IMG/VR virus record: IMGVR_UViG_3300045256_000050
Span: 180,987-244,986 of that record
Length of the DNA stretch: 64,000 nucleotides
Direction: 5' to 3' (one strand)
The translations under genes and the position numbers were made by a program. The notes under the pieces were generated by a model. The model made no database searches. It saw nothing but the letters and a program-made list of their open reading frames with translations, and was not told the origin of the DNA. This document shows, piece by piece, positions 22,878 through 64,000 of the stretch (position 1 is the stretch's first letter; the number at the start of each line of letters is the position of its first letter).

Positions 22878-22972
22878 ATCGTATCTATCCGGTCGGGTCT
22901 GTCAATCCCCGGCGAATAAAAATTTCCGGTTTTCCGTCCGAAAACAGAACCCAGCCGACTAACTAATACCAG

Positions 22973-24136
22973 ATGGCAAACCGGCATAACTACTCGTACC
23001 GTTTTCGGCTAATGCCGAACCAAGAACAACGAGTGCTTCTCGCAAAGCACTTCGGGGCGATCCGGTACGCCTACAACCACTTCCTCGCCGCCCGCAAGGA
23101 CAAGTACCTCACGGCGAAGAAGTCCAGCAACTACTACGGCGACTGCAAGGACTTGACCGAGTTGAAGAAGACCCTGCCGTGGATGAAGGAAGTGTACTCG
23201 CAGTCCTTGCAGTTCTCGCTCAAGTGCTTGGATGCTGCCTACAACAACTTCTTCGCTGGCAGAGGCAAGTTCCCGGTCTTCAAGGCGAAGCACGCCCACC
23301 AGTCCTTCCGTGTCCCACAGAACGTCAGGGTGGTCGAGAACAAGTTGGTTATCCCGAAGTTCCTTGAGGGGATCAGGATGGTCAAGCATCGGGAAGTCGA
23401 GGGCGAAATCAAGTTCTGTACTATCAGCAGGAATAAGGCGGGGCAGTACCACGTCTCGATCACCGTCGAGCGAGACATACCGCAGTTGCCGGTGGTCGAT
23501 ACGGAAGTCGGTGTCGATCTCGGCATCAAGACGCTGGCAACGTGCAGCGACGGCAAGGTGTACGAGAACAAGAAACCGTACCGGAGGTTGAGCCGCAGGA
23601 TCAAGATGGTACAGCGGCGGTTGAGCAAGAAGAAGAAGGGAAGCAAGAACAGGCAGCGAGCGAAGTGTCGGCTCGCCAAGATGCACCTGAAAGTCAAGAA
23701 CATTAGGAACGACCACTTGCACAAGACGACGACCAAGATCATCCGTGAGAACCAAACGGTGTACTTGGAGACGTTGAATGTGCAAGGCATGATGAAGAAC
23801 CGCTGCCTTGCCGGGGCTATCGCTGACGCTGCGTTCTACGAGACACGCAGGCAGTTAGAGTACAAGGCGGGCTGGTACGGGAGGGTGGTCAAGTATCTTG
23901 ACCGTTGGTTCCCGTCCAGTAAAACGTGCAGTGGTTGTGGCTTCATCAAGCAAGACCTTCGGCTGTCGGATCGAGAGTGGTCGTGTCCTCGTTGTGGCGA
24001 GGTACATGACCGTGATTTGAATGCGGCGAAGACGATCTTGCAGCAGGGTAAAATTGAGAGTAAACTACCGTTGGAACGACGGGAAGTAAAGCGTGTGGAC
24101 TCAGGAAGAACTCCGACTGAACTTTTGGTCGGCTGA
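22973..24136 (+). CDS. tnpB: TnpB RNA-guided endonuclease (IS605/IS1341 type)
   Basis: N-terminal HTH (YRFRLMPNQEQ...FGAIRYAYN), RuvC I VGVDLG, II YLETLNV, III DRDLNAA, Zn finger CSGC/CPRC. Confidence 0.96.
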   Translation: MANRHNYSYRFRLMPNQEQRVLLAKHFGAIRYAYNHFLAARKDKYLTAKKSSNYYGDCKDLTELKKTLPWMKEVYSQSLQFSLKCLDAAYNNFFAGRGKFPVFKAKHAHQSFRVPQNVRVVENKLVIPKFLEGIRMVKHREVEGEIKFCTISRNKAGQYHVSITVERDIPQLPVVDTEVGVDLGIKTLATCSDGKVYENKKPYRRLSRRIKMVQRRLSKKKKGSKNRQRAKCRLAKMHLKVKNIRNDHLHKTTTKIIRENQTVYLETLNVQGMMKNRCLAGAIADAAFYETRRQLEYKAGWYGRVVKYLDRWFPSSKTCSGCGFIKQDLRLSDREWSCPRCGEVHDRDLNAAKTILQQGKIESKLPLERREVKRVDSGRTPTELLVG

Positions 24137-24148
24137 GGTTGATACACG

Positions 24149-24181
24149 AAGCCGCTCCCCTTTAGGGGAGCGGTAGTTCAC
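24149..24181 (+). mobile_element. IS200/IS605 right end (3' end of the omega/reRNA scaffold)
   Basis: AAGCCGCTCCCC-TTTA-GGGGAGCGG-TAGTTCAC, the hairpin plus TCAC terminus typical of tnpB right ends. Confidence 0.85.
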
Positions 24182-24474
24182 CAACCCCAGCCGAAGCCGA
24201 AGCCGAAGCGATACTGGTACTGATATTGGAATCCGTAGTTGAAGCCGTAGTTGTTGTAGAGGTACGGGTTGTAGTACGGGTTGACGTATGGGGTGTACGG
24301 GTTGTACGCTGGGAACGCCGGGCGGTAGAGGTACGGGTTGACGTAGTTCGGCTGGAAGAAGTAGTTGTTCACTACGGGCCGAACTTGGGGCTGCGGGTGG
24401 ACGCCGGGACGGGGCTGGGCAGAGGCCACGAGGCCGAAGCACAGAACGGCCGCAAGAGCTACGAGATAACGCAT
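24178..24474 (-). CDS. Secreted Tyr/Asn/Pro-rich low-complexity protein
   Basis: Sec signal MRYLVALAAVLCFGLVASA; YNPY repeats; ends FGFGFGWGW; AGGAGAA SD. Confidence 0.7.
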   Translation of the reverse strand: MRYLVALAAVLCFGLVASAQPRPGVHPQPQVRPVVNNYFFQPNYVNPYLYRPAFPAYNPYTPYVNPYYNPYLYNNYGFNYGFQYQYQYRFGFGFGWGW

Positions 24475-24567
24475 TTGTTCTCCTTCTTTCTAAACGAAAC
24501 TGGCTTCCGGCCAGTCCTTCTGGTATAGTAGTACCACTCCGACCGAAGCCCTTTACAGGATAACTGC

Positions 24568-25272
24568 ATGAGCATTCTTCAGCAATACGACATCTACTGC
24601 GAACACGGGTTCAAGGTCATCCCTCTGATCGAGGGGCTGAAGCGTCCCATGTGCAAGGACTGGACGAAGTACGATGCCGACTTCAACCGGATGATGGTCA
24701 GGAAGCACCCCAAGTGCAACCTGGGCCTTTTACTCGGTGAAGTCATGGACGTGGAGGGCGACACCAAACATGCTAACGATCTAATCGATCAACTCGTTGG
24801 CGACTATCCGCACCCCGTCTACAGAAGCGCCAAATCCCGCCACCACTTGTTCGTAAATCCGGTGCCGGGTTTCCGAATCCTCAAGTTCGAGGGCGTCGAG
24901 TTCCGTGCCGAGCGGCACCAGTCGGTCATGCCACCCAGCACGGTGAAGGCCGTCCAGTACACCTGGGAGAACAGTCTGTGGCTCGACGGCATCCCCAGGA
25001 TGCCGGAACGACTGCTCGCTTTCTTTATGAAAGTGAAGAACAAGAAGCACGTCGTCAAGCCCGGCCACATGCGGCTGTACTGCGGGGCTTGTGGCGAACC
25101 GTGCTTCATCCACAAGAAACGGTTCGACCTGGAACTGGAATTGTTCAAGCAGGTCAAGCAGAAGTGGCAGTGTCAGGACTGCCGGGAGTTCGACCTGCGG
25201 GACGCCTGCCGGTCACTCCGTAAGCAGCGACGGCACGATAGCCCGTTCGTCAGTCGTCTGGCGGTTGGTTAA
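24568..25272 (+). CDS. Bifunctional DNA primase/polymerase (Prim-Pol) domain with C-terminal Zn finger
   Basis: GFKVIPL...KRP...W, NLGLLLG, MDVEGD, HHLF, EFR...QSVMPPS; CGAC...CQDC. Confidence 0.8.
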   Translation: MSILQQYDIYCEHGFKVIPLIEGLKRPMCKDWTKYDADFNRMMVRKHPKCNLGLLLGEVMDVEGDTKHANDLIDQLVGDYPHPVYRSAKSRHHLFVNPVPGFRILKFEGVEFRAERHQSVMPPSTVKAVQYTWENSLWLDGIPRMPERLLAFFMKVKNKKHVVKPGHMRLYCGACGEPCFIHKKRFDLELELFKQVKQKWQCQDCREFDLRDACRSLRKQRRHDSPFVSRLAVG

Positions 25273-25923
25273 GAAGCCCATAGACTTCAGGAACATCTCG
25301 ATCTGCTCGATGTCCTCGACGTACATCGAGTGCCCGCCGTCGTCGATCAACTCGAAGGTGTTGTAGTTCTTCAACAACAACGCCTTCTTCATCGGCACGA
25401 ACCGCTCCTCCCACTCGAAGCAGTCGTCGTTGGTGTTGTGGAACAGGATGACCGGCGTCCTGTTCCTCGCCTCGGGCACGTTCCACGGCTGGAACACGGC
25501 CCCGGAGTGGGCGACCACGGCGGCGAGCCGCTTCTGCGTCTCGAAGAGGTACTGGAGGGCCATGACGGCACCTGCCGAGAACCCGATGATCGCCACGTTG
25601 TCGTCCATGATCCCGTACTCTTGCTGGATGTCGGCCAGTTCCTCCTGAATGGAGAACACGGCCGCAGGCTGGCCGTTCACCGCAGCGTCCTGGTCTTGGG
25701 CGTTGCGGGGGAGCGGATACCAAGCGTAACCGTGCGGGGTGAAGGACACCAGCATGGTATTCTCAAACTGGCAGTGGGTGAGTAACCCCTGCATGAACTG
25801 CGTGCCGCTCTGTCCCCGGCCCGGCAGACAGAGGATGGCGTGTGTCGGGTGGTCTGGGGTAACGATCTCGATGTGATTGACGACCCCTCGGCCCCGCTTC
25901 GTGTACGTTCTCAGACTACTCAA
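25213..25923 (-). CDS. Alpha/beta hydrolase (phospholipase/carboxylesterase family)
   Basis: LPGRG oxyanion motif, GFSAG nucleophile, DDC and GGHS catalytic Asp/His; TTG start. Confidence 0.85.
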   Translation of the reverse strand: MSSLRTYTKRGRGVVNHIEIVTPDHPTHAILCLPGRGQSGTQFMQGLLTHCQFENTMLVSFTPHGYAWYPLPRNAQDQDAAVNGQPAAVFSIQEELADIQQEYGIMDDNVAIIGFSAGAVMALQYLFETQKRLAAVVAHSGAVFQPWNVPEARNRTPVILFHNTNDDCFEWEERFVPMKKALLLKNYNTFELIDDGGHSMYVEDIEQIEMFLKSMGFLTNRQTTDERAIVPSLLTE

Positions 25924-26854
25924 TTCCCCACTCCTTGTAGAAATCGTATTGCTTGTTGCTCATGGCCTTGCAGAACTTCGACCACAGTTGTCCCGGATAG
26001 CTGGACTTGATGATCGGCATGAACCGCTTGGCCGCTTCCTTGTCACACTTGTCCAACGTGTTCCTCAACACCTTCACGTCGTAGCCGTGACACTTGTACG
26101 CTTTCTGCAACTGCGTCGTCGTCCAGTACAATTCCTCGTCGAACGACCACAGCGTCTCCCACCGCTTGTCCTCCACGAACCCCACGGCGAAGTCGCACAT
26201 CTCGAAGATCAGCTTCGCCAGCGTGGGCGAGGCCAGCCAGAAGTTGCCGAGCGAGCGGTACTCCATGCCGTAAGACTTCGGCCGGTAGCGTCCGGCCTGC
26301 CCGTACACGACCCGGCGTCGGGCGGATGTCGGGTCGTGATCCATAAACAGACTCGGAATCCCCACGAACAGGTCGAGCATGTAGACGACGATCCACGACT
26401 CCCAGGTGGTTTCCTTCAGTACGCTGTCGCCGCTGGCACCCAGGTGGATGTGCCCGCCGCCGGTCCGCAGACTGGTCTTCTGGATGATGTTACCGGGCGG
26501 CTTCTTACTCTTGCCGGTGTAGACGCAATAGTCCTTCGCACACCCGGCGATGCGTGACCGCTCGTCGAGCAGTTCGCTCTCCGGGTACTCGCACGACGCC
26601 TGGGGCGTGAGCCGACACGGGGCGACGATCTCGGCGTAGGTCTTGAAGCACGACCGGAAGTTCTCGATGGCCTCGTCGTGCCCCTTGCCGGGGGCGATGG
26701 CACACTCGGCCAGCACGTTGTCCCAATAGAAGCTGTGACCGTTTTTAGTGTAACGCTCCTCGGCGGTGCCGGGGACTCGGGGAATGGCACTGACGTGCTG
26801 CCCGTTCAGCAGCAGCATGAACTCAGGGTCAGAGCCGTAGGTTTCGATTGGCAT
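25916..26854 (-). CDS. phiEco32-like COOH-NH2 (amido)ligase type 2
   Basis: GSDPEF, DNVLAE, GGHIHLG, RRVVYGQAGRYRPKSYGMEYRSLGNFW. Confidence 0.85.
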   Translation of the reverse strand: MPIETYGSDPEFMLLLNGQHVSAIPRVPGTAEERYTKNGHSFYWDNVLAECAIAPGKGHDEAIENFRSCFKTYAEIVAPCRLTPQASCEYPESELLDERSRIAGCAKDYCVYTGKSKKPPGNIIQKTSLRTGGGHIHLGASGDSVLKETTWESWIVVYMLDLFVGIPSLFMDHDPTSARRRVVYGQAGRYRPKSYGMEYRSLGNFWLASPTLAKLIFEMCDFAVGFVEDKRWETLWSFDEELYWTTTQLQKAYKCHGYDVKVLRNTLDKCDKEAAKRFMPIIKSSYPGQLWSKFCKAMSNKQYDFYKEWGIE

Positions 26855-27621
26855 GGTTCTCCCATCTTGTACCAAGTTGGCATTTCGTACTTCGGCGATC
26901 CTTCACTAAAGCCAACGATCCCGAAGCGGTTGTGCATGTCGCCAATCGGAATTTTGGCCGGGTAGTTGTCTTTGATGTTGCCGCCGAACAGCTTCCGGTC
27001 GCCAAACTTCATGATGTGGTTGATCCCAGGCATCGCATCCGAAAGCTGTTTCTTGTCGTAGATTTGGTAGGGGTTGACCCGTTCTTCAAGGATGTCCTCG
27101 ACGGTCTTCCGCCACGGCGTTCCCCGCTGGTGCATCAGCCCGGTGCGGAGGAGCAGCGTGTACATCGAGATCAGCGGGGCGGATTGCATCCACCGCTTGC
27201 TGCCCTGGAACAGCCAGATACCGGCCTTCCGGTAGATGGCCGGGGCGTCCAACCCCTCGAACACTTCCGTCTTCTTCATCTTCAGTGAAGTCTCGACTTG
27301 GTTGATGAACTCCACCGCCGCCGGGATTTTGGTTCTAAACGTCTTGTCCTTGTAATTGGATAAGATGATCCTCGTCGTGTCCATGCACAACGGAAGGTCG
27401 TTGATCGGCGAATAGATAAAGTTGTAGATTTCGACGTACTTGTTGTTCAACAAGGCGTAGATGGCGTCCTGCAAGAAGTCCTTGCAGTAGACCATCTGGT
27501 GAATCTGTTTGTTATCCTTCGTGACGAAGGCGTATTCAAGACCCTCGGAATACACCTGGGAAATGCGGGACTTCTTCGGCTTCCACTCGATCTTGATCTT
27601 ACGGATTTGGCCCTCTGGCAT
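26806..27621 (-). CDS. Hypothetical protein co-transcribed with the amidoligase
   Basis: 271-aa ORF, GAGGT SD. Confidence 0.65.
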   Translation of the reverse strand: MPEGQIRKIKIEWKPKKSRISQVYSEGLEYAFVTKDNKQIHQMVYCKDFLQDAIYALLNNKYVEIYNFIYSPINDLPLCMDTTRIILSNYKDKTFRTKIPAAVEFINQVETSLKMKKTEVFEGLDAPAIYRKAGIWLFQGSKRWMQSAPLISMYTLLLRTGLMHQRGTPWRKTVEDILEERVNPYQIYDKKQLSDAMPGINHIMKFGDRKLFGGNIKDNYPAKIPIGDMHNRFGIVGFSEGSPKYEMPTWYKMGEPCQSKPTALTLSSCCC

Positions 27622-27676
27622 CGTTACCTCTTGGGAAATCTTACTTAACTACAATAGAAGCGTCAAGGTGATTTGA

Positions 27677-28522
27677 ATGACAATAATTCCATCCGACTTG
27701 TCCCTGGTGTACTCCGGCGGCACGAACAACAACGACCCGAACGCCTCCCTGGGAGGCGAGCCGTCGTCGTTCCGTGTGGCGACGAACGTCATCAACAACC
27801 TGTTCGACGACGTGCAGCCGGAGGAGTCCACCGAGGGGGCCGAGGACTACCGCTGCGTGTACCTGTTCAACGACTCCGGGGAGACGTGTTACGACATCAC
27901 CCTTTGGATCGCCGAGGAGCAGGCTGGCGGCTCGACCATCGAAGTCGGGATCAACGGCACCGACGAGTTCCAGCGGCTCATCGTATCCGGCGGTTCTGTA
28001 ACAGGCGGGTCCGTTCGCCTCTCGTTTGCCGGGGTTGAATTTGATTCAAACTACAACCCGGACCTTGCCGTCTGGGCCACCGCTTTGCAAACTAGCCTCC
28101 GGGCCGTCGAAGTGGACGGGGCGACTGTACTGAGTGATGTCACCGTGACCGCTCAGAACTCTGGCGGTGGTACGACCATTTTCGACATCGGGTTCGGTGG
28201 CGAGGACGGCAAGCGTGCCCAGCCCCAGATCATTGTCGTCAGTAACGACCTAGAACCGCTCGGGACGATTGAGGCCACGGTCACAACCCTCCAGGGCGGC
28301 TCGCCGGTCAACACCGTGGCCCCGCAGATTGAAGTAGAGGGCAGCCAACCGCCAGACGTGGGGTTCTTCGTACCGACCCAAATCTCTCCCATTACGATTC
28401 CGAGACTTGACCCGAACGACGGGTTTCCGTTATGGTTTAAGAGAGTAACACCGGCGGGCACGGCTGCCCTCGCCAACGATTTCATCACCTTGAGAATTAG
28501 GGTAACATCCTTTGGCTCCTGA
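27677..28522 (+). CDS. Phage virion structural protein
   Basis: LVYSGG...NASLGG, NNLFDDV...EDYRCVY, LWFKR pattern; TAACTA upstream at 27646. Confidence 0.65.
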   Translation: MTIIPSDLSLVYSGGTNNNDPNASLGGEPSSFRVATNVINNLFDDVQPEESTEGAEDYRCVYLFNDSGETCYDITLWIAEEQAGGSTIEVGINGTDEFQRLIVSGGSVTGGSVRLSFAGVEFDSNYNPDLAVWATALQTSLRAVEVDGATVLSDVTVTAQNSGGGTTIFDIGFGGEDGKRAQPQIIVVSNDLEPLGTIEATVTTLQGGSPVNTVAPQIEVEGSQPPDVGFFVPTQISPITIPRLDPNDGFPLWFKRVTPAGTAALANDFITLRIRVTSFGS

Positions 28523-29282
28523 TAACATTCCTCTCTGCCCGATGACTGGAAAGCCGTGTTTCCATCAGAAAACACTGCAAGTCACCGAAGTGAAAGATAA
28601 CCAGTCCCAGGTGGTACACAACATGTGCCAGGGGTGTGCCCCGACGTACATGCAACTGTCCCAGATCGGCCAAGAGCCGATGCTGTTCTCTCCCCAAGCC
28701 CCGGTCGAACAACCGCCTCCTCCGCAAAAGAAGCAGGTGGTGGTGAAGGACAACGACAAGCCCACGTCCGTCCCGGTCAAGAAGGGGAAGAAGAACCCGA
28801 AGTACATCGAGACGGCCGAGGAGTTGTTCGAACTCTTCATGATGAAGCCGAAGAAGAAGGAAGTGGCGTGCCCGAGTTGCGGCATGACCCCGACCGACTT
28901 CCAGAAGAAGGGCAAGATGGGCTGCCCGGAGTGCTACAACTTCTACAAGGACGACGTTCCCGACGTGCTGGCCGGGTGCCAGGAGGGCGGGACGAAGCAC
29001 GTCGGGAAGAAGCCGAAGATGCCCGTCGGCAACCCGGTCGAAGTCCTCAAGATGTTGAAGCTGAAGAAGGCTCACGCCATCGAACAGCAGAAGTACGAGG
29101 AAGCCGCCGAACTGAAGAAGCAGATCGCCGCCATCGAAGAGAAACTGCCGAAGGAGAACACCGATGAGACTCAGGAAGATAATCAGCGGGGGACAGACGG
29201 GGGCGGACCAGGGGGGACTGTGGGCGGGACGGATCACGGGGATGGAGACGGGCGGGACGGCCCCGAAGGGGTGGATGACTGA
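28512..29282 (+). CDS. mcsA: McsA-like protein (CxxC motifs + UvrB/C domain)
   Basis: CPSCGMT..DF.K.GKMGCPECY, KHVGKKP, AIEQQKYEEAAELKKQI. Confidence 0.8.
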   Translation: MAPDNIPLCPMTGKPCFHQKTLQVTEVKDNQSQVVHNMCQGCAPTYMQLSQIGQEPMLFSPQAPVEQPPPPQKKQVVVKDNDKPTSVPVKKGKKNPKYIETAEELFELFMMKPKKKEVACPSCGMTPTDFQKKGKMGCPECYNFYKDDVPDVLAGCQEGGTKHVGKKPKMPVGNPVEVLKMLKLKKAHAIEQQKYEEAAELKKQIAAIEEKLPKENTDETQEDNQRGTDGGGPGGTVGGTDHGDGDGRDGPEGVDD

Positions 29283-30679: not shown

Positions 30680-30726
30680 AGTCTTCCTCCTCACGTTAGA
30701 CTTGTCCAGCGTGTTATCTATGGCTA

Positions 30727-31857: not shown

Positions 31858-31863
31858 GCCATA

Positions 31864-32447: not shown

Positions 32448-32451
32448 TATG

Positions 32452-32754: not shown

Positions 32755-32802
32755 GAGTATTCCTCCTAAGATACGTTATTTATCCTCAACCGGCTCAATC
32801 TT

Positions 32803-33528: not shown

Positions 33529-33541
33529 GAGGGTATCTACG

Positions 33542-34565: not shown

Positions 34566-34619
34566 CTTGACTCCTTGACTACCTATATTAGTCAGATTCT
34601 TACTAAATGAGAGGCCGAT

Positions 34620-45932: not shown

Positions 45933-46057
45933 TGTATTCTCCTATGTGGAAGTTGGGTTAAGTTTCACAATTCTCGCCTTGCTACAATTAGATACGCACC
46001 ACTTCTAATTCTGTTCTTGTCCTGGGATAATCCCTCGCTCCCTGGATAACTACCTCT

Positions 46058-46918
46058 ATGAGAGCTTTCCGGTTGATTTTCTTTCGCTGCTCCGTCACAA
46101 AACAATACTTCGTACACCTTTGTGAAGACAGGTCGAGCGGCGTTGAAGAAGTGAAGAGATTCTGTCCCACGCCGCTCGACGTGTTGGGCGACGTGTGCCC
46201 GGCCTCGTCGATGGACTACATGAAGATATGTGAGATTTGCGAGAGCCAGCACGGCTGGTTCTTACCCAACGACATAGCGACGGCCTGGGTGGACGGGCTG
46301 ATCTCAGGCGAGCGGACGCTGGACGAGATGTACAGCGGTGGGTCCAACCCGCACGTCAAGGGCATGACTAATGCGACGAGTCAGCAGTGGCAGATCATCA
46401 CGGGAAGCCTGATGGGAGCGGGATACATACAGGAGGTTGGTTCTGGTCACTGTTTCGGAATGACCGAGAGTAAGGACAAGGACTGGCTCGGGTATAAAGT
46501 AGCAGAGCTTTGTGAGTTGGGGAATCCGACGTTCTTCGAGGACGGCGGGAGATTCCGCTGGCGGACCAGGGTGGACGCAATCTCGTTCGACCTGTTCCGG
46601 CAGAACCACTATACGAAGCGTCAAAAAACCATCAGGCCGGTCGTACTTGAGCAAATCATGGACACCGGCTTGATGGTGTGGTACATGGACAAGGGGTTCT
46701 GGCGAACCCCAACGACCATCGCATTTCGCACCAGCTATCTCGACGACAAGGGCAACCGTGCCATCGTGAACTTCCTGAACTCCGTTGACATCAACGCCGA
46801 GTTCAAGAAGTACGAGCGGTCCAAGCAGATTGTGTTAGACAAAGAGGGGACGGAGACGTTCCTGGCGACCATCTCCGGGCGGGTGCCGCACTTCATGGAG
46901 TACCGGCTAGAGTCTTAG
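46058..46918 (+). CDS. LAGLIDADG-fold protein lacking both catalytic acids, N-terminal Cys domain
   Basis: ITGSLMGAG and LMVWYMDKG replace GxLLGDG and LAIWFMDDG; TAACTA 5 nt before ATG. Confidence 0.75.
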   Translation: MRAFRLIFFRCSVTKQYFVHLCEDRSSGVEEVKRFCPTPLDVLGDVCPASSMDYMKICEICESQHGWFLPNDIATAWVDGLISGERTLDEMYSGGSNPHVKGMTNATSQQWQIITGSLMGAGYIQEVGSGHCFGMTESKDKDWLGYKVAELCELGNPTFFEDGGRFRWRTRVDAISFDLFRQNHYTKRQKTIRPVVLEQIMDTGLMVWYMDKGFWRTPTTIAFRTSYLDDKGNRAIVNFLNSVDINAEFKKYERSKQIVLDKEGTETFLATISGRVPHFMEYRLES

Positions 46919-48052: not shown

Positions 48053-48759
48053 TCCACGTCCTCGTCACGTTGTTCAACACCGGCCACGTTTTCGGTCGGT
48101 GCTACGCCTCCCTGACAGCCCAGAAGTCCAAGTTCAAATGCTACGTCGTTGACGACTGCTCCACCGACGACTCGGCACAGGTCGCCGAGTCGTTGACCTG
48201 TTTCGACACCCGGTTCATCGTCATCCGCAACCAGAAGAAGTTGTACCAGTCCGGCTGTTACGACTTCCTGATGAACGAGATGGAAATCCGGGACGAGGAC
48301 GTGTGCGTGGCCGTCGATTCCGACGACTACCTGCTTGGGACCGATGTGTTTGACTTAGTGAAGGAACAGTACGACCGGGGGTGTGTACTCACCCACGGCA
48401 CCTTCGTTCGCACGAGTGGCGGGATCGCCACGCAGCTAGTTCCGCCCTACGACCTGACCCGACTCCGGCGTTACCCTGACGTGCCGTCACACCTGCGGAC
48501 CTGGAAGGCGTGGTTGTGGCGGAAGATGCCCGCCGACGTACTGAAAGCACCCAACGGCTACTACTGGCGTGCGGCGGGCGACTTGGCGTTCATGTACACG
48601 ATGATGGAGATGTCGGGAGGCAGGATCGGATTCATCTCGAAGCCAGTCTACTGTTACGACGACACGTTGCCGACCTGCAACCACAACAGGAACCCAGGCA
48701 TTCAGAAACACAACGACCACATCATCCGCAGTCGGTGTTCCTTGCCCAAGTTATACTAA
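48049..48759 (+). CDS. GT2-family glycosyltransferase
   Basis: VVDDCSTD, VDSDDYL, AAGDLA. Confidence 0.88.
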   Translation: MIHVLVTLFNTGHVFGRCYASLTAQKSKFKCYVVDDCSTDDSAQVAESLTCFDTRFIVIRNQKKLYQSGCYDFLMNEMEIRDEDVCVAVDSDDYLLGTDVFDLVKEQYDRGCVLTHGTFVRTSGGIATQLVPPYDLTRLRRYPDVPSHLRTWKAWLWRKMPADVLKAPNGYYWRAAGDLAFMYTMMEMSGGRIGFISKPVYCYDDTLPTCNHNRNPGIQKHNDHIIRSRCSLPKLY

Positions 48760-49707
48760 ACCACAGATCGGGGCGGACACGTTGGAGAACCAGTCGAATG
48801 CTTCGTCGGGCTTCGGGTTGGCCCACGCCCGGTAGCGGTTGTAAGCGAGGTTGCTCGGTTCGGCGTAGCTTTTCTCCAGTCCCTTGAGAATCCAGGGCAG
48901 GAGCATGAGGCCGGGCTTATTGAACACGTCGGCCAGGATGCCAATGCCGCTGGGGAAGTAGAACCCGTAGTCGATGTCCTGCATGCAGTACAGGGCGGTG
49001 CTGAGCTTTTCGCCGATCACCTTACGGCACGGTGCCCGTTGTTCCATCACGTTCGCCACCGCTTCCGTTTTGTCCCGGTCGTACTCCGCACCGAGGAACA
49101 TGAAGCTGCCTTTGCCTAAGAACCCGTAGACCTTCGTCAAGAAATCGATCCACTGCTGCTCTGACCACAGACTCCATCCGCCCGCTTTCTGTCTGTCCTT
49201 GTCCCGGTTGGAGATGTAGACGGCGATAATCGGCTTGGGCAGGTTTGCCATTAGTTTCGATCTGGCGTCGGCGTCCACGCCGGTGAACTTCAGCCCGTAG
49301 TGATAGCTGATCGGGAATGGCTTGAGCCAGTCGGCGAGGGGTCGGCCGGATTCAAGGTGTACGTTGGCTGAGAGGTTCTGGACCCACGGCTTGTCAACGA
49401 ACCCGAGTCCGCCGATGGTCATGGGCCAATCGGCGGGGAGGCACTGGCTGATGACCTGCCATGCGTTCCGGTCCTCCATGTACCCGCCCCAATGGACGTT
49501 GGGGAGCATCTTAACGAACTCGCCGCCCCGGTTCATTTCGCCCCGTGAGGCGACCGAGACGATGATCTCTTTGCCCAGCTTCTCTTTGAAGTGCATCAGT
49601 TTGGTGTAGACCCAACTGATGTCCCCGATGCCGCACGGGAGGCAGTAGTGACAGCACTTCTCGGGTCCGCCGAAGTCGGCGGGGGTGTAGATTTTGTCTT
49701 CGCTCAT
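48751..49707 (-). CDS. GT9-like (GT-B) glycosyltransferase
   Basis: CGIGDISW, FLGAEYD, FPSGIGILAD. Confidence 0.6.
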   Translation of the reverse strand: MSEDKIYTPADFGGPEKCCHYCLPCGIGDISWVYTKLMHFKEKLGKEIIVSVASRGEMNRGGEFVKMLPNVHWGGYMEDRNAWQVISQCLPADWPMTIGGLGFVDKPWVQNLSANVHLESGRPLADWLKPFPISYHYGLKFTGVDADARSKLMANLPKPIIAVYISNRDKDRQKAGGWSLWSEQQWIDFLTKVYGFLGKGSFMFLGAEYDRDKTEAVANVMEQRAPCRKVIGEKLSTALYCMQDIDYGFYFPSGIGILADVFNKPGLMLLPWILKGLEKSYAEPSNLAYNRYRAWANPKPDEAFDWFSNVSAPICGLV

Positions 49708-53720: not shown

Positions 53721-53732
53721 CCTGGAGATTCC

Positions 53733-57151: not shown

Positions 57152-57208
57152 TTTTCCTTTACTGAGGGCAGATCGAGGGTACAATCCTCCTTAACTGGAG
57201 GGCAAGCG

Positions 57209-58267
57209 ATGCAGTTCCGCATGTACCACACGAGCTACGATTTCGCCAAGATCGTCGGCGACGTTGCCGGGCAGAAGATGCCCGCCGTGGACAACTTCTA
57301 CAAGTTCGCCATCAACTCCGAGTGGCAGCGGCGGGCCGCTCAGCAGTCGCTTCACTCCTTCCTCTCGCCCAACAACCAGAACGCCCGAGCGGCTGAAATC
57401 AATCAGTTGATCGCCGAGTCGTCCTGGTACGAGAACGGCAAGCCGTACTACAACCTGCACCCTCGCATGATCGACGTGTTCGGCCGTGCCAAGCTGAACT
57501 TCCCCAGCAAGTACATCGAGTTCCCGTTCCAGACCGTCGCCGTCAACTTCGCCCTCGAAGACGACACGTTCAAGCTCGACGAGACGCACCGTCTCCAGTC
57601 GTGCCTCGTCTTCCGTGGCAAGGTCCGTGATCCGCTCAAGCCGATCCCGGAACACGAGCCGAACTGCATCATGATCTACATGGACTGGAACGAGCGGCAC
57701 AAGTCGGAGGTTTACAGCGAACACAAGCGGCGCACGTTCACGCTGGGCGAGCCGATCATGACGTGGCGGCGGTGGACGTGGGACGCCGACGAGACGGTGG
57801 ACGACGCCCTGAACCGGCTGCCGATGGATTTGTCGATGGCGAAGGGCATCCGCATTCCCGACGCCATGATCGAGAAGGCGATCAAGCTCGTCGTCTCGGT
57901 GGCTTTCTTGCACAAAGACGAAAGCCCCATCGTCGTCCCGCACCTGCTCAACCGGGACGCCAAGCAGTTGCGTCTGCGTGAGGCGGCGGACCGGACAATT
58001 AAAGAACTCCACGACAAGGCGGCGAAGGAGCGTGGGGCACGGGGTTGGCTGGTCGGGTCGGAGGAAATGTTCGACCACGGGCACATCGGCCCGGCCCCGG
58101 AGCAAGAGGAACACAAGGTCACGGGCCGGGAGCTACAGTTCGCCCACATCGTCTCGGGTTACTGGAAGCTCTGCCGGTACGGCCCTAAGATGGAGTCCGG
58201 CCGGGTGCGGTGGATCATGCCTCACGTCCGTGGCTGGGGCAAACCCTTCAAACACGAAGAGGAATAA
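57209..58267 (+). CDS. Hypothetical phage protein
   Basis: 352 aa; C-terminal H.V.G.W...GP....RWI.PH.RG motif; GGAGG SD. Confidence 0.7.
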   Translation: MQFRMYHTSYDFAKIVGDVAGQKMPAVDNFYKFAINSEWQRRAAQQSLHSFLSPNNQNARAAEINQLIAESSWYENGKPYYNLHPRMIDVFGRAKLNFPSKYIEFPFQTVAVNFALEDDTFKLDETHRLQSCLVFRGKVRDPLKPIPEHEPNCIMIYMDWNERHKSEVYSEHKRRTFTLGEPIMTWRRWTWDADETVDDALNRLPMDLSMAKGIRIPDAMIEKAIKLVVSVAFLHKDESPIVVPHLLNRDAKQLRLREAADRTIKELHDKAAKERGARGWLVGSEEMFDHGHIGPAPEQEEHKVTGRELQFAHIVSGYWKLCRYGPKMESGRVRWIMPHVRGWGKPFKHEEE

Positions 58268-58268
58268 C

Positions 58269-58775
58269 ATGGGGGTCAGCATGCACACCTACGTCGGGCC
58301 TTACGTCGAGTGTCACACGAGCGAAGTCGAAGTGGATGCGAAGATGCGGGCCTGCACTCGTGGGCCGACTTGTTCGCAGCACGAGCGGGAAGTCCACGAC
58401 CGGCAACGGAAGTTCTGCCCTCAGTGCGGCAGCCCGATTGGTGAAGTGACGTACAAGACGAAGCAGAAGAACGTCGTGGCGAACTGGCTGCGGGAGGAGA
58501 TCAACGAAGACCTGTCGAACGTCAGCAACGACACGTTCTTCAACCAGCGGTCACGAGACAACGGCATCGACACCTGGATCGCCAACAAGAAGTTCACCGG
58601 CCGGAACTGCTGGCTGGACGAGGCGTCGTATGTCGGCGAGATCACGATTGACAACATCGTCCGGGAGACGGAAGAGTTCCGGGTCAAGTTCGCCGACGCC
58701 CTCCGGGTGTTCCGTGAGAAGTACGGCGACGGCAAGTGCATCGTGAAGTGGGGTATCGTCCACTACTGGAGTTAA
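58269..58775 (+). CDS. Zn-ribbon-containing hypothetical protein
   Basis: KFCPQCGSPI; GAGGA SD. Confidence 0.65.
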   Translation: MGVSMHTYVGPYVECHTSEVEVDAKMRACTRGPTCSQHEREVHDRQRKFCPQCGSPIGEVTYKTKQKNVVANWLREEINEDLSNVSNDTFFNQRSRDNGIDTWIANKKFTGRNCWLDEASYVGEITIDNIVRETEEFRVKFADALRVFREKYGDGKCIVKWGIVHYWS

Positions 58776-58780
58776 ACGAA

Positions 58781-58816
58781 AAAGCCCGGCCGCTCGGAGG
58801 AGAGCGGCCGGGCTTT
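58781..58816. terminator. Bidirectional terminator
   Basis: AAAGCCCGGCCGCTC...GAGCGGCCGGGCTTT between convergent genes. Confidence 0.85.
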
Positions 58817-58826
58817 CGTAGCGAAG

Positions 58827-59726
58827 TTACTTCGTCTTGGCAGGAGCGGTGACGCCCGTGTCCACGACTCGTTGCAACGCCACTGCAACATCTCGGCCGG
58901 AGGCCGACTGCAACGCTTGGGAGGCAACTTCCTTCGCATCGCTTCTTGCCTGGGCCAGTTGGGCTTGCAGGTCTTTGATCTGGTCTTGTAGGGACGTGAT
59001 CGTCTCGTCCATCGCCGATACCCGAATCTGGTGCAGGTTCTTCTCGGCGTCGAAGTCCTTCTTGAGCAGTGCCATCTCGTGATCGTACTGCTTCTTCAGG
59101 GTGTTGCTGAGGACCGCTTCGGCCTTCGCCACTTCCGTCTTCAACCGCTGATCGAAGCCAGCGACCTGTGCCTGGAGGTTGGTGAACTCCTGCTCCTTAG
59201 CCTTGATGGCGGCATCCCGCTCCTTCCAGCTACGCTCCAGGGTTTCACTGCGTAGAGCCTCGTCCCGCTTCTTCTTGTTCATCTCGGCGTCGAACTCGTC
59301 GTACTGCTTCTTCTTCAGTTGCTCGAAGTTGTAACGGTACTCGTCCTCGGCCCGCTGGAGACGGCGGTTCCGCTCGTTTTCCTCTTCGTCCCACTCCTGC
59401 TCACGCTCGTTACGCTGAGCGTTCCACTCCTGCTGCTCTGCCTCACGCTGGGCCTTCATGTCGTCCAGGGTGACGGCTTCGCTCTCGATGTTGTGGAGTT
59501 CCTTGAGCCGCTGGTTCTTGAGGGCGATTGCCGTCTCAAGGTTCTGCATCTCTTGAATCTTGCTCGACAGGGCACCGCTCAGGTTAGCCAGCGATTCTTG
59601 AACAGAAACCTGCAAGGTGCCGACTTCTGCGATCACGGACTGAAGGTTAAGACCCTTCACTGAATCAAGCACAGCCTGTGCTTCGGTTGCTTCGATCTTT
59701 TTGTTCTTGTTGCCTTTGGTAGCCAT
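58827..59726 (-). CDS. Long coiled-coil protein
   Basis: E/K/Q/R-rich heptads over most of 299 aa; GAAAGGA SD. Confidence 0.8.
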   Translation of the reverse strand: MATKGNKNKKIEATEAQAVLDSVKGLNLQSVIAEVGTLQVSVQESLANLSGALSSKIQEMQNLETAIALKNQRLKELHNIESEAVTLDDMKAQREAEQQEWNAQRNEREQEWDEEENERNRRLQRAEDEYRYNFEQLKKKQYDEFDAEMNKKKRDEALRSETLERSWKERDAAIKAKEQEFTNLQAQVAGFDQRLKTEVAKAEAVLSNTLKKQYDHEMALLKKDFDAEKNLHQIRVSAMDETITSLQDQIKDLQAQLAQARSDAKEVASQALQSASGRDVAVALQRVVDTGVTAPAKTK

Positions 59727-59800
59727 TGTAGTTTCCTTTCGGTTGTTGACAGTTGTAGGTTGTTTTCGTAACATGCGATCAGAAACTTGAGCGGGGGTTG

Positions 59801-59806
59801 TAAATA
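59801..59806 (+). promoter_or_regulatory. T4-like late promoter core (representative of about 20 copies)
   Basis: TAAATA; variants TAGATA, TATATA and TAACTA recur in intergenic gaps upstream of virion-type genes. Confidence 0.6.
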
Positions 59807-59810
59807 AAAC

Positions 59811-60443
59811 ATGACTAGCTTCAAAGAGTTCTTCGAGGCCAACGACCCGATGACGGGCATCCCGCACACCGTCAAGACGGCGACCGTGCCCGCCCCCGCA
59901 ACACCGCCCGCTCCTCGCAACACGATGACGCAACAGATGGATCAGCGTGTCCAGACGGGCAAAGGCTACGAGGCCAAGATTATTCAGAAGCTCATCTCGG
60001 GCGGGCTGAAGATCACGCCCGTGACCGGCCGACAGGACATGTTCGATAAGATCGACGGCATCTGGGAGAACGGCCCGGCCGGGTCCGGCGGGATGCAGAT
60101 CAAGTACCGTGACAGCGGCTACGACATCCTGATGGAAGTTCGGAAGGGTAGCAACCCAGGCCGGGACATGGTGGGCAAGAGCGTGTACTACACGGTCGTC
60201 CCGAAGGACGGTGAGTTCGCCTACATCTTCAAGACGGTGGACTTGAAGAAGCTGGTGCAGGACGCATTGAATGAGCTACAGCAGGACGGCGGCTTCGGCG
60301 GGAAGCGGGAGTTTCATTCGAGCGATCAGGTCGAACTGCGGCAGACCCGTGACCCGGCCGACAACACGCCGAAAATCATGGCCTTCATCCCGATTGACGT
60401 GCCTGTTCCGATTCGCCGCCAGCGAGTCAACCTGTTCAAATAA
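59811..60443 (+). CDS. CTS-like leader + PD-(D/E)xK nuclease-like fold protein
   Basis: MTSFKEFFEAN leader; GYEAKI...DKIDG...MQIKYR; TAAATA 4 nt before ATG. Confidence 0.6.
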   Translation: MTSFKEFFEANDPMTGIPHTVKTATVPAPATPPAPRNTMTQQMDQRVQTGKGYEAKIIQKLISGGLKITPVTGRQDMFDKIDGIWENGPAGSGGMQIKYRDSGYDILMEVRKGSNPGRDMVGKSVYYTVVPKDGEFAYIFKTVDLKKLVQDALNELQQDGGFGGKREFHSSDQVELRQTRDPADNTPKIMAFIPIDVPVPIRRQRVNLFK

Positions 60444-60470
60444 AAAACGCCGGGTTCAGCCCGGCGTTTT
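60444..60470. terminator. Bidirectional terminator
   Basis: AAAACGCCGGG-TTCAG-CCCGGCGTTTT. Confidence 0.85.
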
Positions 60471-60574
60471 CGTTATCATCCAGAGGATGAACAGGCTCAC
60501 CATCCAGAAGATCATTAAGCCCAAGTCCTGTTTCCACGACAGCATTCGGTACAACTCTCGGTCGAGCCAATCCA

Positions 60575-60907
60575 TCATAGCTCCGGCCACTTTTGCCGCA
60601 CGAGAGGGATGTCTATCTTTTTCCATCCTGCCTCCTGGTTGAGTGCCCTGGCTCTTGCTTTCTCCAGCCGCTCGTCTTCGATCTTCGGGACCAACTCGGC
60701 CCACAGGGCGTCCAGGTTCATCTCCTGCCAGTTCTCCACCGACACTTTGAGTAAGCGTGCGGCGTCAACGGCCCGGATGTACCTATTCCCCTTTCGCAGC
60801 ACCATTCCCCAGAGGGAGTCGTGCCACTCGGTCCAGTTCTCTGCGAGGTACTTGTCTTGCTCCTCGGGAGATAGCTTTCTGAAGTCTTCCGGGGTCATCA
60901 TCACCAA
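60575..60907 (-). CDS. Hypothetical protein
   Basis: GGAGG SD; operon context. Confidence 0.55.
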   Translation of the reverse strand: MVMMTPEDFRKLSPEEQDKYLAENWTEWHDSLWGMVLRKGNRYIRAVDAARLLKVSVENWQEMNLDALWAELVPKIEDERLEKARARALNQEAGWKKIDIPLVRQKWPEL

Positions 60908-61320
60908 CCTCCAACATGCGAGTCGTAGTATTCCACCACGACGTTGTACACCTTCTGGTGTCCTTTTAGCTCCGGGAAGCCGCTCACGTCGAACGTGGCC
61001 CGAATGAGGTAGCTCCGGTGCGGGTAGGTCATTCGCTGGTCACGCTGGATGGTGCAGTGCGGTTCGAGGAGTTTTTCCAGCCCGTCCCAATCGTCGTACT
61101 GGCAGCGACTCGTGAAGAGTTCGTAGTTGATGTGGAAGGGTGAAATGGGTGGGACGTGTCCCACGCCCCACTGGCCGTAGCCCTCGTACCTTTCACTAAA
61201 AGCAACGCCGCTAAGCTCCTTCAGCTTAGCGGCGGCTCTAATCGCCCACGCATGGTCGGCGAGTCGTTCGTGTTTCATCTGCTCGTAGGCAGCTTCCAGT
61301 TCTTGTTGCGTAAACATCAC
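60901..61320 (-). CDS. Hypothetical protein
   Basis: Coupled ORF in operon. Confidence 0.55.
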   Translation of the reverse strand: MMFTQQELEAAYEQMKHERLADHAWAIRAAAKLKELSGVAFSERYEGYGQWGVGHVPPISPFHINYELFTSRCQYDDWDGLEKLLEPHCTIQRDQRMTYPHRSYLIRATFDVSGFPELKGHQKVYNVVVEYYDSHVGGW

Positions 61321-61736
61321 TTCAAATGGCGAGCCATTGCCTTTCCAAAAGATTCGTCGCTGTACCAGCCGGTTTCACCCTTGTCGTAGTTGTGGCAGCC
61401 GAAATACTTGTCGGGGTCGCCCTCGACGGTGTACCGGGCCACCCAGCCGGATTCTTCATCCTTGTAGTCCACGTTCGGGTTGTCCCATGTCTCGTAAACC
61501 ACTTCGAGCTTGGCGATCAGGATTTCTTTGCCGTTCCGTTTCTTGAACAGCTTGTCGCCCCGCCGCTTGATCCCCTTCACGCCGTCGAACTCGGACAGAG
61601 CCTTGTCTACGGTTTCTTGGAGCGTCTTGCGACGTGCCTCTTCGTACTTGCGTGAGGCTTCTTCTCTCTCCTCACGCTTCTTCTGCTCGGCCTTCTGCTT
61701 CTTGATCTCTTCTTTGGCGAAGTCCAGTGCGCTCAT
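61317..61736 (-). CDS. Hypothetical protein
   Basis: From MSALDFAKEE; GAGG SD. Confidence 0.6.
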   Translation of the reverse strand: MSALDFAKEEIKKQKAEQKKREEREEASRKYEEARRKTLQETVDKALSEFDGVKGIKRRGDKLFKKRNGKEILIAKLEVVYETWDNPNVDYKDEESGWVARYTVEGDPDKYFGCHNYDKGETGWYSDESFGKAMARHLK

Positions 61737-61990
61737 ACGGCCCTCTTCTTTCCCAGCACTTCGCTGGTGTAGTCGAGCTTGTTGGAGTGCCCGCCGTCGC
61801 TGTGATAGAGCGACAGGAAGTTCCCCTTGATCTCGACTTCGATGTCCTCGGCGGCGAGGCGGTAGTCGGTGAACTCCGACCTGTCCGCCTCGTTGTAGAC
61901 CCGGAAGAAGTATTCCTTGCTGAAGGGGTTGTAGAGTAAGAACCCCGTCACGCCTTCGGCCGACACTTCTTGGAGAGGAATGTTGTTCAT
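61733..61990 (-). CDS. Hypothetical protein
   Basis: From MNNIPLQ; AGGAG SD. Confidence 0.55.
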   Translation of the reverse strand: MNNIPLQEVSAEGVTGFLLYNPFSKEYFFRVYNEADRSEFTDYRLAAEDIEVEIKGNFLSLYHSDGGHSNKLDYTSEVLGKKRAV

Positions 61991-62407
61991 CGTGTACTCC
62001 TGGCCCGCCCGTTTTCGACGAGCCATGCCCAGATTTCGTAGGAATCAACGCCGTTCATCCAACCCGGCACCCAATCCTCGGCAGAGCCGCCACCGGGCGT
62101 CGGGAAGTACCATAGCTGGGCGTTCTCGCCGCAGCCGCAGTATTCGTCGCAGTAGTTAAGGCCGGTTATCGCCGAGATGCTGCATTTCCAATACCGGGGC
62201 AGCACGTCCTTCCGTAAGCTGGAAGAACGCTTCGACGCCGACCTTTTCGATTTCTTGACGGACTTTTTCTTGCCAACCTTTGCGTTGGCGTTCTTTGAGA
62301 TGGTGGAGGAGTTCTTCGGCGGGGATTTCGTACTCGAAGACGACTTCATCGGGGTCCATCCCTTGCAGTGCGTCAAGCAAATCCTTTGCTTGTACTTGAA
62401 CTTTCAT
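61987..62407 (-). pseudogene. Apparently frameshifted hypothetical gene
   Basis: N-half in frame 62156-62407 and start-less C-half in frame 61987-62376; deleting one base near 62219 joins them. Confidence 0.4.
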
Positions 62408-62409
62408 AG

Positions 62410-62483
62410 TGCCGTCGGCGAGAGTTGAACTCGCAACATTCAGATTCTAAGTCTGACGACTCTGCCAGTTGGTCTACGACGGC
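62410..62483 (-). tRNA. tRNA-Leu(TAG) with short variable loop, no encoded CCA
   Basis: GCCGTCG/CGACGGC acceptor, GAC/GTC D-stem with TGG, TCAGA-CTTAGAA-TCTGA, 5-nt variable ATGTT, GCGAG-TTCAACT-CTCGC, A73; 74 nt. Confidence 0.92.
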
Positions 62484-62649
62484 AAGGGCGGCAGTTTTTG
62501 TAACCATCCGGGGCTGAACCCGGCAAGGACGTATGGGGCTTGTCTCCATCTGCCGCCTGTTCTCCCATTATCGGGTCGAGAAAAACTCGATGTTGAACAT
62601 CATTCGGAGTATAGCCGCCTACGTCAATGGCGTACCTTATATTAGCGTA

Positions 62650-62994
62650 TTAGCCGCAGATTGCAACTACAAATACGTCAGCTTCGCCTCGGTGTACTCG
62701 TCCACCAGCAGGCACCACTCCTCCAGTTCCCGCTGGACCGTTTTCTCCCACAAAGTCTGCTCGTCCTGCGACGGCATCTTCTTCTTGCGGTACTCGGCCC
62801 GGACCTGACGCATCGCCACCTTGCCCGCCAACGATGTCTCTTTGATACCGAAAATAGCCGGTCGGGAACTTGGTGCGTGCGGCCTCGCACAACCCGAGAA
62901 TCACCCGTTTGATCTCGGGTTGCTTCTCAAGCCACTCGACTCCTCGACGGAGTTCCTTGTCCAGTGAAGTGTGTTTACCTTTCTTATCACTCAT
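62650..62994 (-). CDS. Hypothetical protein
   Basis: From MSDKKGKH. Confidence 0.45.
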   Translation of the reverse strand: MSDKKGKHTSLDKELRRGVEWLEKQPEIKRVILGLCEAARTKFPTGYFRYQRDIVGGQGGDASGPGRVPQEEDAVAGRADFVGENGPAGTGGVVPAGGRVHRGEADVFVVAICG

Positions 62995-63237
62995 GGCGGC
63001 ACCAGGATGTATTGTAGGAGAAAAACCCGAAATCACAACGCTTCCTTCACCCATTCTACACGATGTTATCGTATAACATCGGCGTCGAACTTACAAAAAG
63101 GAGAGATGTTATGAAAAGGAAGGGTTAGCGAACAGTTGAACCGAAATCTGGGTAAATCTACGGAAACCTCAAGGAAAATCTTTCCAAATTCGTGATTTCC
63201 AGACCAGAAATTCAGGGTTAGCCCTCTAAATAACATC

Positions 63238-64000
63238 ATGCTCGTAGTGGAACGACACCACATTGCCGGAAATGACACGATCATCCGGCTCTGCTCAAAC
63301 TCAAAGGAATTGTACAACCAGTGCAATTTCCTCATGAGACACGCTTGGTTCGGCGGCAACCCACTACCCGACATCAACATCCTTGTCACCGCCGTCAAGG
63401 ACACCGACTGCTTCAAGAACCTCCACAATACCAAGACGGCGAAGCAGACAGTACGCAAGTGCCTGACCGATTGGAAGAACTTTAGGAAGACACTCAACGC
63501 CTACACGAAAGACCCGACCAAGTTCGTCAAGCGACCGAAACCACCATACTACAAGGAGAAGCTGGCTCAGGTCATCTTCTACAACGAAACCATCAAGGGA
63601 GGGCAAAACAAGAAGAAGGCGAAACCCAACACGATCACGCCCACCAATGACTGTTTCGGGATTCAGAGCCAGAGGCAGTACAAGCAGGTGATCCTGACGC
63701 CCAAGAGGTTCGGGTTCGTCGTGGACGTTCAGTATGAACAACCTGCACAACCGAGAAGCAAGGCAAAAGGCATAGCGTGCGTTGACATCGGGTTGAACAA
63801 CTTGTGTGCGATAACATCAGACCAGACAACGACTTCCATACTGGTCAACGGTCGCATCTGCAAGAGCATCAACCAGAAGTTCAACAAGCACAACACCAAG
63901 CGAGAAAGCAAGAAACGGTACTTTAGGTTGGAGAACTACTTTCACCACGTCAGCAAGTTCCTGATCCAATTTTGCCTGAAGCATGGTATCGGGACAATCA
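63238..64000 (+). CDS. tnpB: Second TnpB (IS605 OrfB type), truncated by window end
   Basis: Manual translation MLVVERHHI...SKELYNQCN...RPKPPYYK...ACVDIGLNNL (RuvC I)...NYFHHVSKFLIQFC; absent from the ORF track because it has no stop; TAAATA 5 nt before ATG. Confidence 0.9.
   Translation, partial: MLVVERHHIAGNDTIIRLCSNSKELYNQCNFLMRHAWFGGNPLPDINILVTAVKDTDCFKNLHNTKTAKQTVRKCLTDWKNFRKTLNAYTKDPTKFVKRPKPPYYKEKLAQVIFYNETIKGGQNKKKAKPNTITPTNDCFGIQSQRQYKQVILTPKRFGFVVDVQYEQPAQPRSKAKGIACVDIGLNNLCAITSDQTTTSILVNGRICKSINQKFNKHNTKRESKKRYFRLENYFHHVSKFLIQFCLKHGIGTI

Follow-up and report, generated by a model that had tools for sequence, protein, structure and literature searches.

The DNA analysed here, referred to as the window, is a stretch of 64,000 nucleotides (nt) that makes up the final 64 kb of a linear IMG/VR record of 244,986 bp, IMGVR_UViG_3300045256_000050 (58% GC, CheckV completeness 48%), from a giant T4-like phage. 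It carries two genes for TnpB proteins, tnpB-1 and tnpB-2, and we consider it likely that they belong to two unrelated insertion sequences (ISs), termed IS-1 and IS-2, in each of which tnpB stands behind a promoter-like box that is the element's own. A preliminary description of the same DNA had taken positions 22960-64000 as one feature in which the phage had placed its late promoter before two domesticated nucleases. This span holds two separate loci, and the tnpB genes in them are not phage-domesticated nucleases. What that description read at the two gene starts, TAACTA-7 nt-ATG at 22973 and TAAATA-5 nt-ATG at 63238, both lacking a Shine-Dalgarno (SD) sequence, is exact in the sequence; it had overlooked a tnpA gene 1.1 kb upstream of tnpB-1 and the truncation of tnpB-2 at codon 254. 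The two proteins are divergent, as had been noted, with no BLASTP similarity between them, and their acquisition as independent events from unrelated lineages is supported by the sequence comparisons below. Independent recruitment therefore stands as independent acquisition but not as recruitment by the phage, as the motif lies in mobile elements.

Promoter-like boxes upstream of the two tnpB genes

The features that carry this reading are as follows.
22960-22967, plus strand: promoter-like box TAACTAAT, internal to IS-1, 5 nt before the ATG of tnpB-1
22973-24136, plus strand: tnpB-1, 387 amino acids (aa), ISDra2-like RNA-guided nuclease with D182, E266, D348 and two CxxC pairs
63121-63237, plus strand: left end of IS-2, 117 bp, holding TAAATA at 63227-63232; homology with L023 and L024 starts here
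63238-64000, plus strand: tnpB-2, first 254 codons, cut by the contig end; RuvC-I motif CVDIGLN

The hexamer of tnpB-1 is TAACTA (22960-22965), followed after 7 nt by the ATG, and that of tnpB-2 is TAAATA, followed after 5 nt; no GGAG-type SD sequence lies within 20 nt upstream of either start codon. Both boxes recur, partly as variants, in related copies of the elements, the loci of which are given here as L numbers. In lineage 1, to which tnpB-1 belongs, a TAnnTA box was present in all nine contexts examined and CTAnnTAAT is invariant in the six copies that could be aligned. The box takes the form TAACTAAT in the window, L004, L079 and L080, TAGATAAT in L075, TATATAAT in L005 and TAAATAAT in L101, with TATATAAG as a further variant. 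L104 has TATATA-5 nt-GTG and L105 has TATATA 36 nt upstream of the start with an SD sequence present, and the ATG has been lost in L080, in which a later ATG with AAGGAG serves as the start. The box sits in the internal spacer between tnpA and tnpB in L079 and L105, and between the left end and tnpB in L080 and L104.

In lineage 2, 20 of 31 metagenome copies of tnpB-2 (56-100% identity, 28-53% GC) have TA[T/A]ATA at 5-6 nt from the start codon, the box lying within a conserved ...AACCCTnnTATATAA block that is followed by N4-ATG; others show one-base variants, including plain TATAAT at 6 nt. Five other lineage-2 loci were inspected, with TATATA found in L023, L024 and L098 and the box absent in L096 and L097, so that about two thirds of these 36 copies keep the box. 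As the boxes are kept in copies whose flanks are non-homologous, they are, judged from these alignments, element-borne parts of the insertion sequences. The preliminary description had itself held that an IS-internal promoter, or a motif within an IS end, would speak against it, and this is the arrangement found: the IS-1 motif lies in the tnpA-tnpB spacer and that of IS-2 in the 117-bp left end.

IS-1, an IS200/IS605 element

By its anatomy, IS-1 (20976-24181) is a complete IS200/IS605 (IS608-like) element bearing tnpB-1. Its parts, in addition to tnpB-1 and its box, are listed here.
20971-20975, plus strand: TTTAC target site, with TTAC as transposon-associated motif (TAM); TTAC abuts the left end in the window, L079, L080 and L104
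20976-21174, plus strand: left end, with conserved blocks and a CCCTTTAGGG hairpin core resembling that of the right end
21175-21432, minus strand: orfX, a small conserved open reading frame (ORF) downstream of tnpA, 75% aa identity to an ORF in L079
21448-21861, minus strand: tnpA, Y1 (HUH) transposase of 137 aa, Pfam Y1_Tnp E 6.9e-36, 123 bits
21865-22898, minus strand: passenger cassette of ~1 kb between tnpA and tnpB, absent from L079
22875-22890, minus strand: perfect phage-type TAGATA-cgat-ATG before the 161-aa passenger gene
24064-24181, plus strand: omegaRNA scaffold (right end) with three stem regions; the element terminates ...GGTAGTTCAC
24182-24201, plus strand: flank as putative omegaRNA guide, adjoining the right end and unique in the window

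Homology at the left end with L079, L080, L005, L075, L104 and L105 starts at 20976, being fragmentary in L005, L075 and L105. Subterminal hairpins of the CCCTTTAGGG type are found in both ends, terminal inverted repeats are absent and the insertion lies 3' of TTAC, as expected of the family. The transposase is intact, with its HIH motif and the tyrosine in GYF, and shares 90% identity with that of L079, a JGI contig in which tnpA likewise stands divergent to a tnpB, there 88% identical. The window and L079 are collinear by blastn over 20971-21862 and 22941-24184, with ~1 kb extra in the window between tnpA and tnpB. The position of orfX is occupied by an ORF in L079 (3178-3459) and in L105 (4052-4354), these products having 85-100 aa, and orfX gave no match to a ribbon-helix-helix or any other Pfam domain.

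TnpB-1 contains the Pfam domains HTH_OrfB_IS605, OrfB_IS605 and Cas12f1-like_TNB and aligns to the TnpB of ISDra2 (8H1J/8EXA) with an E value of 1e-74. D182, E266 and D348 as well as C319/C322 and C338/C341 are aligned, which bears out the earlier remark that all three RuvC acidic residues are kept. The start at 22973 is backed by homology at the N-terminus, whereas the public gene call begins at 23012.

The right-end hairpin mentioned in the preliminary description was located at 24151-24174, and the right boundary is sharp, with six copies shared to TTCAC (24181) and unrelated beyond. Across six copies, compensatory changes were counted at 10 of 64 predicted pairs, of which about half belong to the right-end stems (24064-24174), and such changes occur in all three stem regions. 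An Rfam search of the window returned no omegaRNA family, its matches being to tRNA and a group II intron only. By analogy with the ISDra2/IS608 mechanism, we infer that the flank at 24182-24201 would serve as the guide of the omegaRNA; TTAC joined to the flank from 24182 is the predicted donor joint after excision and would be a canonical TnpB target. The TCA of the IS right end (24178-24180) is at the same time the stop codon of a 98-aa ORF (24178-24474, minus strand) with a signal peptide and rich in Pro, Tyr and Asn, the 3' end of which contains the guide region.

The passenger cassette holds ORFs at 21924-22304 (126 aa) and 22392-22877 (161 aa) and a terminal hairpin at ~21886-21912. The 126-aa ORF begins MNRRNALKAMAG, which resembles a Tat-type signal. 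The 161-aa protein has a 27%-identical paralogue in the phage record at genome positions 48652-49302, which itself has TACATA-N5-ATG.

IS-1 copies and mobility

Relatives of IS-1 occur in at least nine non-homologous contexts, with a single copy within the 245-kb record. The contigs carrying lineage-1 copies range from 35 to 58% GC and their flanks have no tblastx similarity to the phage; megablast of the locus against a phage collection gave no match. Read depth in the source sample is 70-105 over the left end, 20-50 over tnpB and 10-15 over the flanks, so that the left end and tnpB stand at 2-7x the flanks, and the cassette is single-copy. One contig of this sample skips 21862-23045 and represents a cassette-less form, and others leave IS-1 at 24178-24183 into several different flanks. 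IS-1 is thus multi-copy in its source metagenome, and from the distribution of their copies both insertion sequences are apparently still mobile.

In L075 (2500-3883) the same left end (45 nt, 100% identical) was found 1.5 kb upstream of tnpB, with a 375-aa ORF of unassigned function in the place of tnpA, and elements of the IS-1 type, compared in this way, seem to swap internal cargo. Contigs of 160-200 nt from wastewater metatranscriptomes are identical to parts of tnpB-1 within 23279-23768, despite the hot-spring-mat origin of the phage; the right flanks of the wastewater copies differ, indicating that the same element is present elsewhere.

IS-2, a tnpB-only element

Up to the contig end tnpB-2 contains RuvC-I only (CVDIGLN, D183). 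Two IMG/VR copies, L023 and L024, have 90% and 75% protein identity to it and flanks unrelated to the window, and both keep all three RuvC motifs. Full-length relatives have 390 aa with OrfB_IS605 and TNB domains and are without the CxxC zinc-finger cysteines. In L097, a MerR-HTH/resolvase gene of the IS607 type is followed after 480 bp by a 72%-identical relative of TnpB-2, and the window, L023, L024, L096 and L098 show no serine-recombinase TnpA adjacent to tnpB. Since an IS607-type TnpA stands beside the relative in L097 only, IS-2 (from 63121) is, on homology, a tnpB-only derivative of an IS607-associated TnpB lineage.

A break inside a repeated element is a usual outcome of assembly, and the assembly probably broke at the repeated element within tnpB-2. 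The possibility that the gene continues across a circular join was rejected, since the joined frame stops after 33 codons and the record lacks a terminal repeat, which leaves plain truncation. Two metagenomic relatives of IS-2 with 88-89% identity, L126 and L156, have an internal deletion of the left end, which shortens the distance between its start and the ATG to ~25 nt, with TAAATC-3 nt-ATG remaining. A tRNA gene (62410-62483, minus strand) lies ~640 bp upstream of the IS-2 left end.

A gene-start motif of the phage

The public runs that contain the record are hot-spring or microbial-mat metagenomes. Genes for a major capsid protein of T4 type (Pfam Gp23, 282 bits) and for a tail sheath are present in the record, which covers half of the phage genome and yielded no multisubunit RNA polymerase. 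Outside the window it also encodes a sigma-like protein.
Genome 151027-151596 (L100:1357-1926), minus strand: sigma-like protein of 189 aa, Sigma70_r2, region 2 only
This protein matches Sigma70_r2 at 32-33 bits and phrog_234, 'late sigma transcription factor', at an E value of 7.6e-6, which is a weak match; its gene sits amid tail and structural genes.

The preliminary description had likened the tnpB starts to those of 'CTS genes', a term left undefined there, and our motif statistics were run de novo on a rough gene call of 334 genes (91% coding). Before candidate ATGs, TA.ATA peaks at distances of 4 and 5 nt, with 10 and 7 cases respectively, as against 0-1 at each of the other spacings from 0 to 15 nt. 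Of the sense copies, 14 of 29 for TAAATA, 20 of 43 for TAGATA, 11 of 25 for TAACTA and 18 of 46 for TATATA fall in the 45 nt that precede a gene start, compared with 2-20% for control AT-rich hexamers. The spacing is bimodal, being either 4-5 nt without an SD sequence or 12-37 nt with an SD sequence in between, and the tail sheath gene (TAGATA, 32 nt, ATG) belongs to the second class. The ATG-proximal motif precedes 22 genes (7%), and an SD sequence is found at about half of the genes overall. Of the motif genes, half stand at divergent junctions, compared with 27% of other genes. Only the 6-bp core TA[A/G]ATA is conserved, with nothing conserved upstream of it.

In this phage, TA[A/G]ATA-N4/5-ATG is a true signal of gene starts, more frequent there than chance would give. 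That it is merely the stop codon of the upstream gene was considered and rejected, as TGAATA never occurs at the modal spacing, half of the cases stand at divergent junctions and TACATA and TATATA behave alike. We also dropped the idea that TAACTA falls outside the motif, which had been suggested by only 3 of its 25 copies being ATG-proximal, in view of the 11 that lie within 45 nt upstream of genes. T4-type late promoters are gp55-dependent and have an 8-bp TATAAATA -10 element without a -35 element; the core TA[A/G]ATA corresponds to the last six bases of this consensus. The pattern fits a -10-only promoter that would often yield leaderless mRNA, and with this core and a gp55-like sigma in the same phage a late timing of the motif genes is plausible from sequence.

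Those motif genes that could be annotated encode two tail-fibre-like proteins and one LAGLIDADG endonuclease; PHROG and Pfam searches with 20 other motif genes were mostly blank.
46047-46915, plus strand: LAGLIDADG homing endonuclease gene, TAACTA-5 nt-ATG, without an SD sequence
Another selfish nuclease gene thus shares the hexamer variant of tnpB-1. A perfect motif copy was not found at the major capsid gene.

Measured against these statistics, tnpB-2 is a perfect modal match, but tnpB-1 is off the mode with a C at position 4 and a spacing of 7, a spacing shown by only two TA..TA cases including tnpB-1 itself.

Proposed mechanism and alternative explanations

We propose that each tnpB would be expressed from the box of its element (TAnnTA(AT) in IS-1, TA[T/A]ATA in IS-2) located 5-8 nt before an ATG without an SD sequence. 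The spacers between divergent tnpA and tnpB genes of IS605 elements are reported to be bidirectional promoters (bioRxiv 10.64898/2026.09.24.754181), and in Thermus phages leaderless transcripts start 6 nt after the -10 box (bioRxiv 10.64898/2026.04.20.719267). From the boxes we infer promoter activity, with a leaderless or near-leaderless mRNA as the most likely product, the 3' part of which would be processed into omegaRNA. TnpB with this omegaRNA would cut sites made of TTAC plus guide, that is, the joint left after excision by TnpA or, alternatively, the corresponding phage locus without the IS in a genome that is co-infecting or replicating, and recombination after cleavage would restore or spread the element. 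Homing during co-infection, which had also been proposed in the preliminary description, is a reasonable function for these TnpBs.

Several observations weigh against two mobile elements with promoters of their own. A simple scan predicted no sigma-70 promoter with a -35 element before either tnpB; its lone match (minus strand, 22905-22878), the -10 box of which abuts an ATG, is at chance level. TnpB-2 is incomplete in the phage record, and the source sample yielded no contig with an empty site or excision joint. The left end of the L004 copy was not found within 4 kb, so that some copies may be immobile. RNA data consist of a few wastewater contigs of 150-200 nt that are identical to internal parts of tnpB-1 and carry no 5'-end or strand information. 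Finally, the IS boxes resemble the gene-start motif of the phage and all close relatives were found in giant-phage-like contigs, so that 'IS promoter' and 'phage-type promoter' may be the same thing.

This last point leads to a reading that refines rather than opposes ours and that we regard as possible, if on the unlikely side, namely that the ISs are specialised for phages: their lineages would live mainly in giant T4-like phages, their promoter would be shaped to the phages' -10-only leaderless class served by a gp55-like sigma, and TnpB and omegaRNA would be made while phage genomes replicate and recombine. The T4-like core of the motif, the region-2-only sigma matching a late sigma family, the motif at the tail sheath and two tail-fibre-like genes and the LAGLIDADG gene with TAACTA-N5-ATG all agree with it. 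So does the company of the elements, as all relatives of 54-94% identity that were examined lie in giant-phage-like contexts, which are gene-dense and mostly unannotated but include Gp23, homing endonucleases, DNA polymerases and methylases; the best matches in bacterial genomes (one genome per species) are at most 45% identical and mostly have an SD sequence. Two other phage contigs hosting such ISs show an excess of TA[A/G]ATA-N4-ATG, at 9 of 10 such sites the ATG opening 44-140 codons in DNA of 40-42% GC, and by this count the signal seems common to a group of giant phages. An ordinary -10 box of the host type would however explain the boxes equally well, given that the lineage-2 consensus is TATATA with some TATAAT and that L005 also has TATAAT; most motif genes are without annotation, the major capsid gene is without a perfect motif, and the restriction to phages is based on ~15 contexts and one pattern-based genome scan. 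Somewhat less likely still is the fuller version in which the IS605-type and IS607-associated lineages would have convergently fixed the phages' leaderless promoter class, with cutting timed to replication and homing between co-infecting genomes, and in which IS-1 would ferry phage passenger genes that have the same promoter.

The box might instead act in translation initiation, as an AU-rich substitute for the SD sequence rather than as a promoter. TA.ATA does precede the ATG by 4-5 nt, which is where GGAGG-type sequences are most frequent in this genome, and half of the motif genes start between -4 and 18 nt after the upstream gene. A translation signal would however not account for the second population of the hexamer, 12-37 nt upstream with a normal SD sequence in between as at the tail sheath gene, nor for the excess of divergent junctions, the motif that stands directly 3' of a terminator hairpin or the TATAAT variants at the same place in IS copies, and we find this improbable. 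The least probable reading is the original one, in which the phage itself put its late promoter before two TnpBs domesticated for competition or the targeting of host DNA. It would accommodate the motif and the missing SD sequence at both genes, the catalytic residues of tnpB-1 and the two unrelated lineages. However, the motif is inside elements that have carried it into unrelated genomes; tnpA, omegaRNA, TAM and both ends are all preserved; the predicted guide is simply the flank beside the element, which occurs nowhere else in the window, and the element is multi-copy in its sample. With the motif conserved within mobile elements, domestication is largely refuted; where a phage-like promoter is the transposon's own, its position before a tnpB with intact catalytic residues does not speak for domestication. 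We therefore retain the two insertion sequences with boxes of their own as the likely explanation.

Comparison with known systems

IS-1 resembles IS608 and ISDra2 in its HUH/Tyr TnpA, its TnpB with D-E-D residues and a zinc finger, the subterminal hairpins at both ends and the structured RNA at the right end that is followed by the flank as putative guide, and it is inserted 3' of TTAC, the target of IS608. Unlike them, it resides in a giant phage, has an extra conserved orfX and a ~1-kb passenger cassette, has a tnpB without an SD sequence but with a -10-like box 5-8 nt before the ATG, and has its nearest relatives in bacterial genomes at no more than 45% identity. The arrangement with tnpB one way and tnpA plus a small ORF the other way is that of Arc-containing IS605 elements, in which the tnpA-tnpB spacer is a strong promoter (bioRxiv 10.64898/2026.09.24.754181). 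In contrast to these, orfX at the position of Arc is without a ribbon-helix-helix match and the spacer of IS-1 is split by the passenger cassette. The likeness of IS-2 to the IS607 family lies in the MerR-HTH/resolvase gene near the L097 relative of tnpB-2; it differs in having no TnpA beside tnpB-2 in the window and in relatives without the CxxC cysteines.

In T4-like phages, some homing endonuclease genes depend on middle or late promoters of the phage. Like the free-standing and intron-encoded endonucleases of the seg, mob and I-TevI kinds, the TnpB elements are selfish nucleases resident in a T4-like phage, from which they differ in being predicted to be RNA-guided and in the presence of a true transposase. 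Homing endonucleases spread between co-infecting phage genomes by cleavage and recombination (review PMC13565253). The Thermus phages phiYS40 and Lalka27a, which have leaderless middle and late transcripts, share with the present phage a -10-only motif a few nt before the start, the lack of an SD sequence and a thermal habitat; their motif is TANNNT/TAGGGT as opposed to TA[A/G]ATA, they belong to a different phage group, and in the present phage the ATG-proximal form is confined to ~7% of genes, with an SD sequence at about half. Domesticated derivatives of TnpB, such as TldR-type repressors and the ancestors of Cas12, share the TnpB fold family with the present proteins, but in these derivatives nuclease residues, transposon ends or both have been lost and the genes occupy fixed loci beside partner genes, and neither holds for the TnpBs of this phage.

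Both insertion sequences belong to known families. IS-1 offers a fully delimited IS608-like element in a hot-spring giant phage, in which TAM, ends, omegaRNA, predicted guide and passenger cassette can all be read. If some IS605 and IS607 lineages have indeed adapted to phage expression, TnpB elements would join the homing endonucleases as drivers of gene exchange and competition among giant phages, and compact TnpB/omegaRNA pairs with a simple TTAC TAM from a thermal habitat would be added to those available.

The window also contains a third kind of mobile element, a group II intron at 792-3111 (minus strand), delimited by Rfam domain matches at 792-867 and 3033-3111 and with an ORF at 888-2570 that encodes RVT_N, RVT_1, GIIM maturase and HNH domains.

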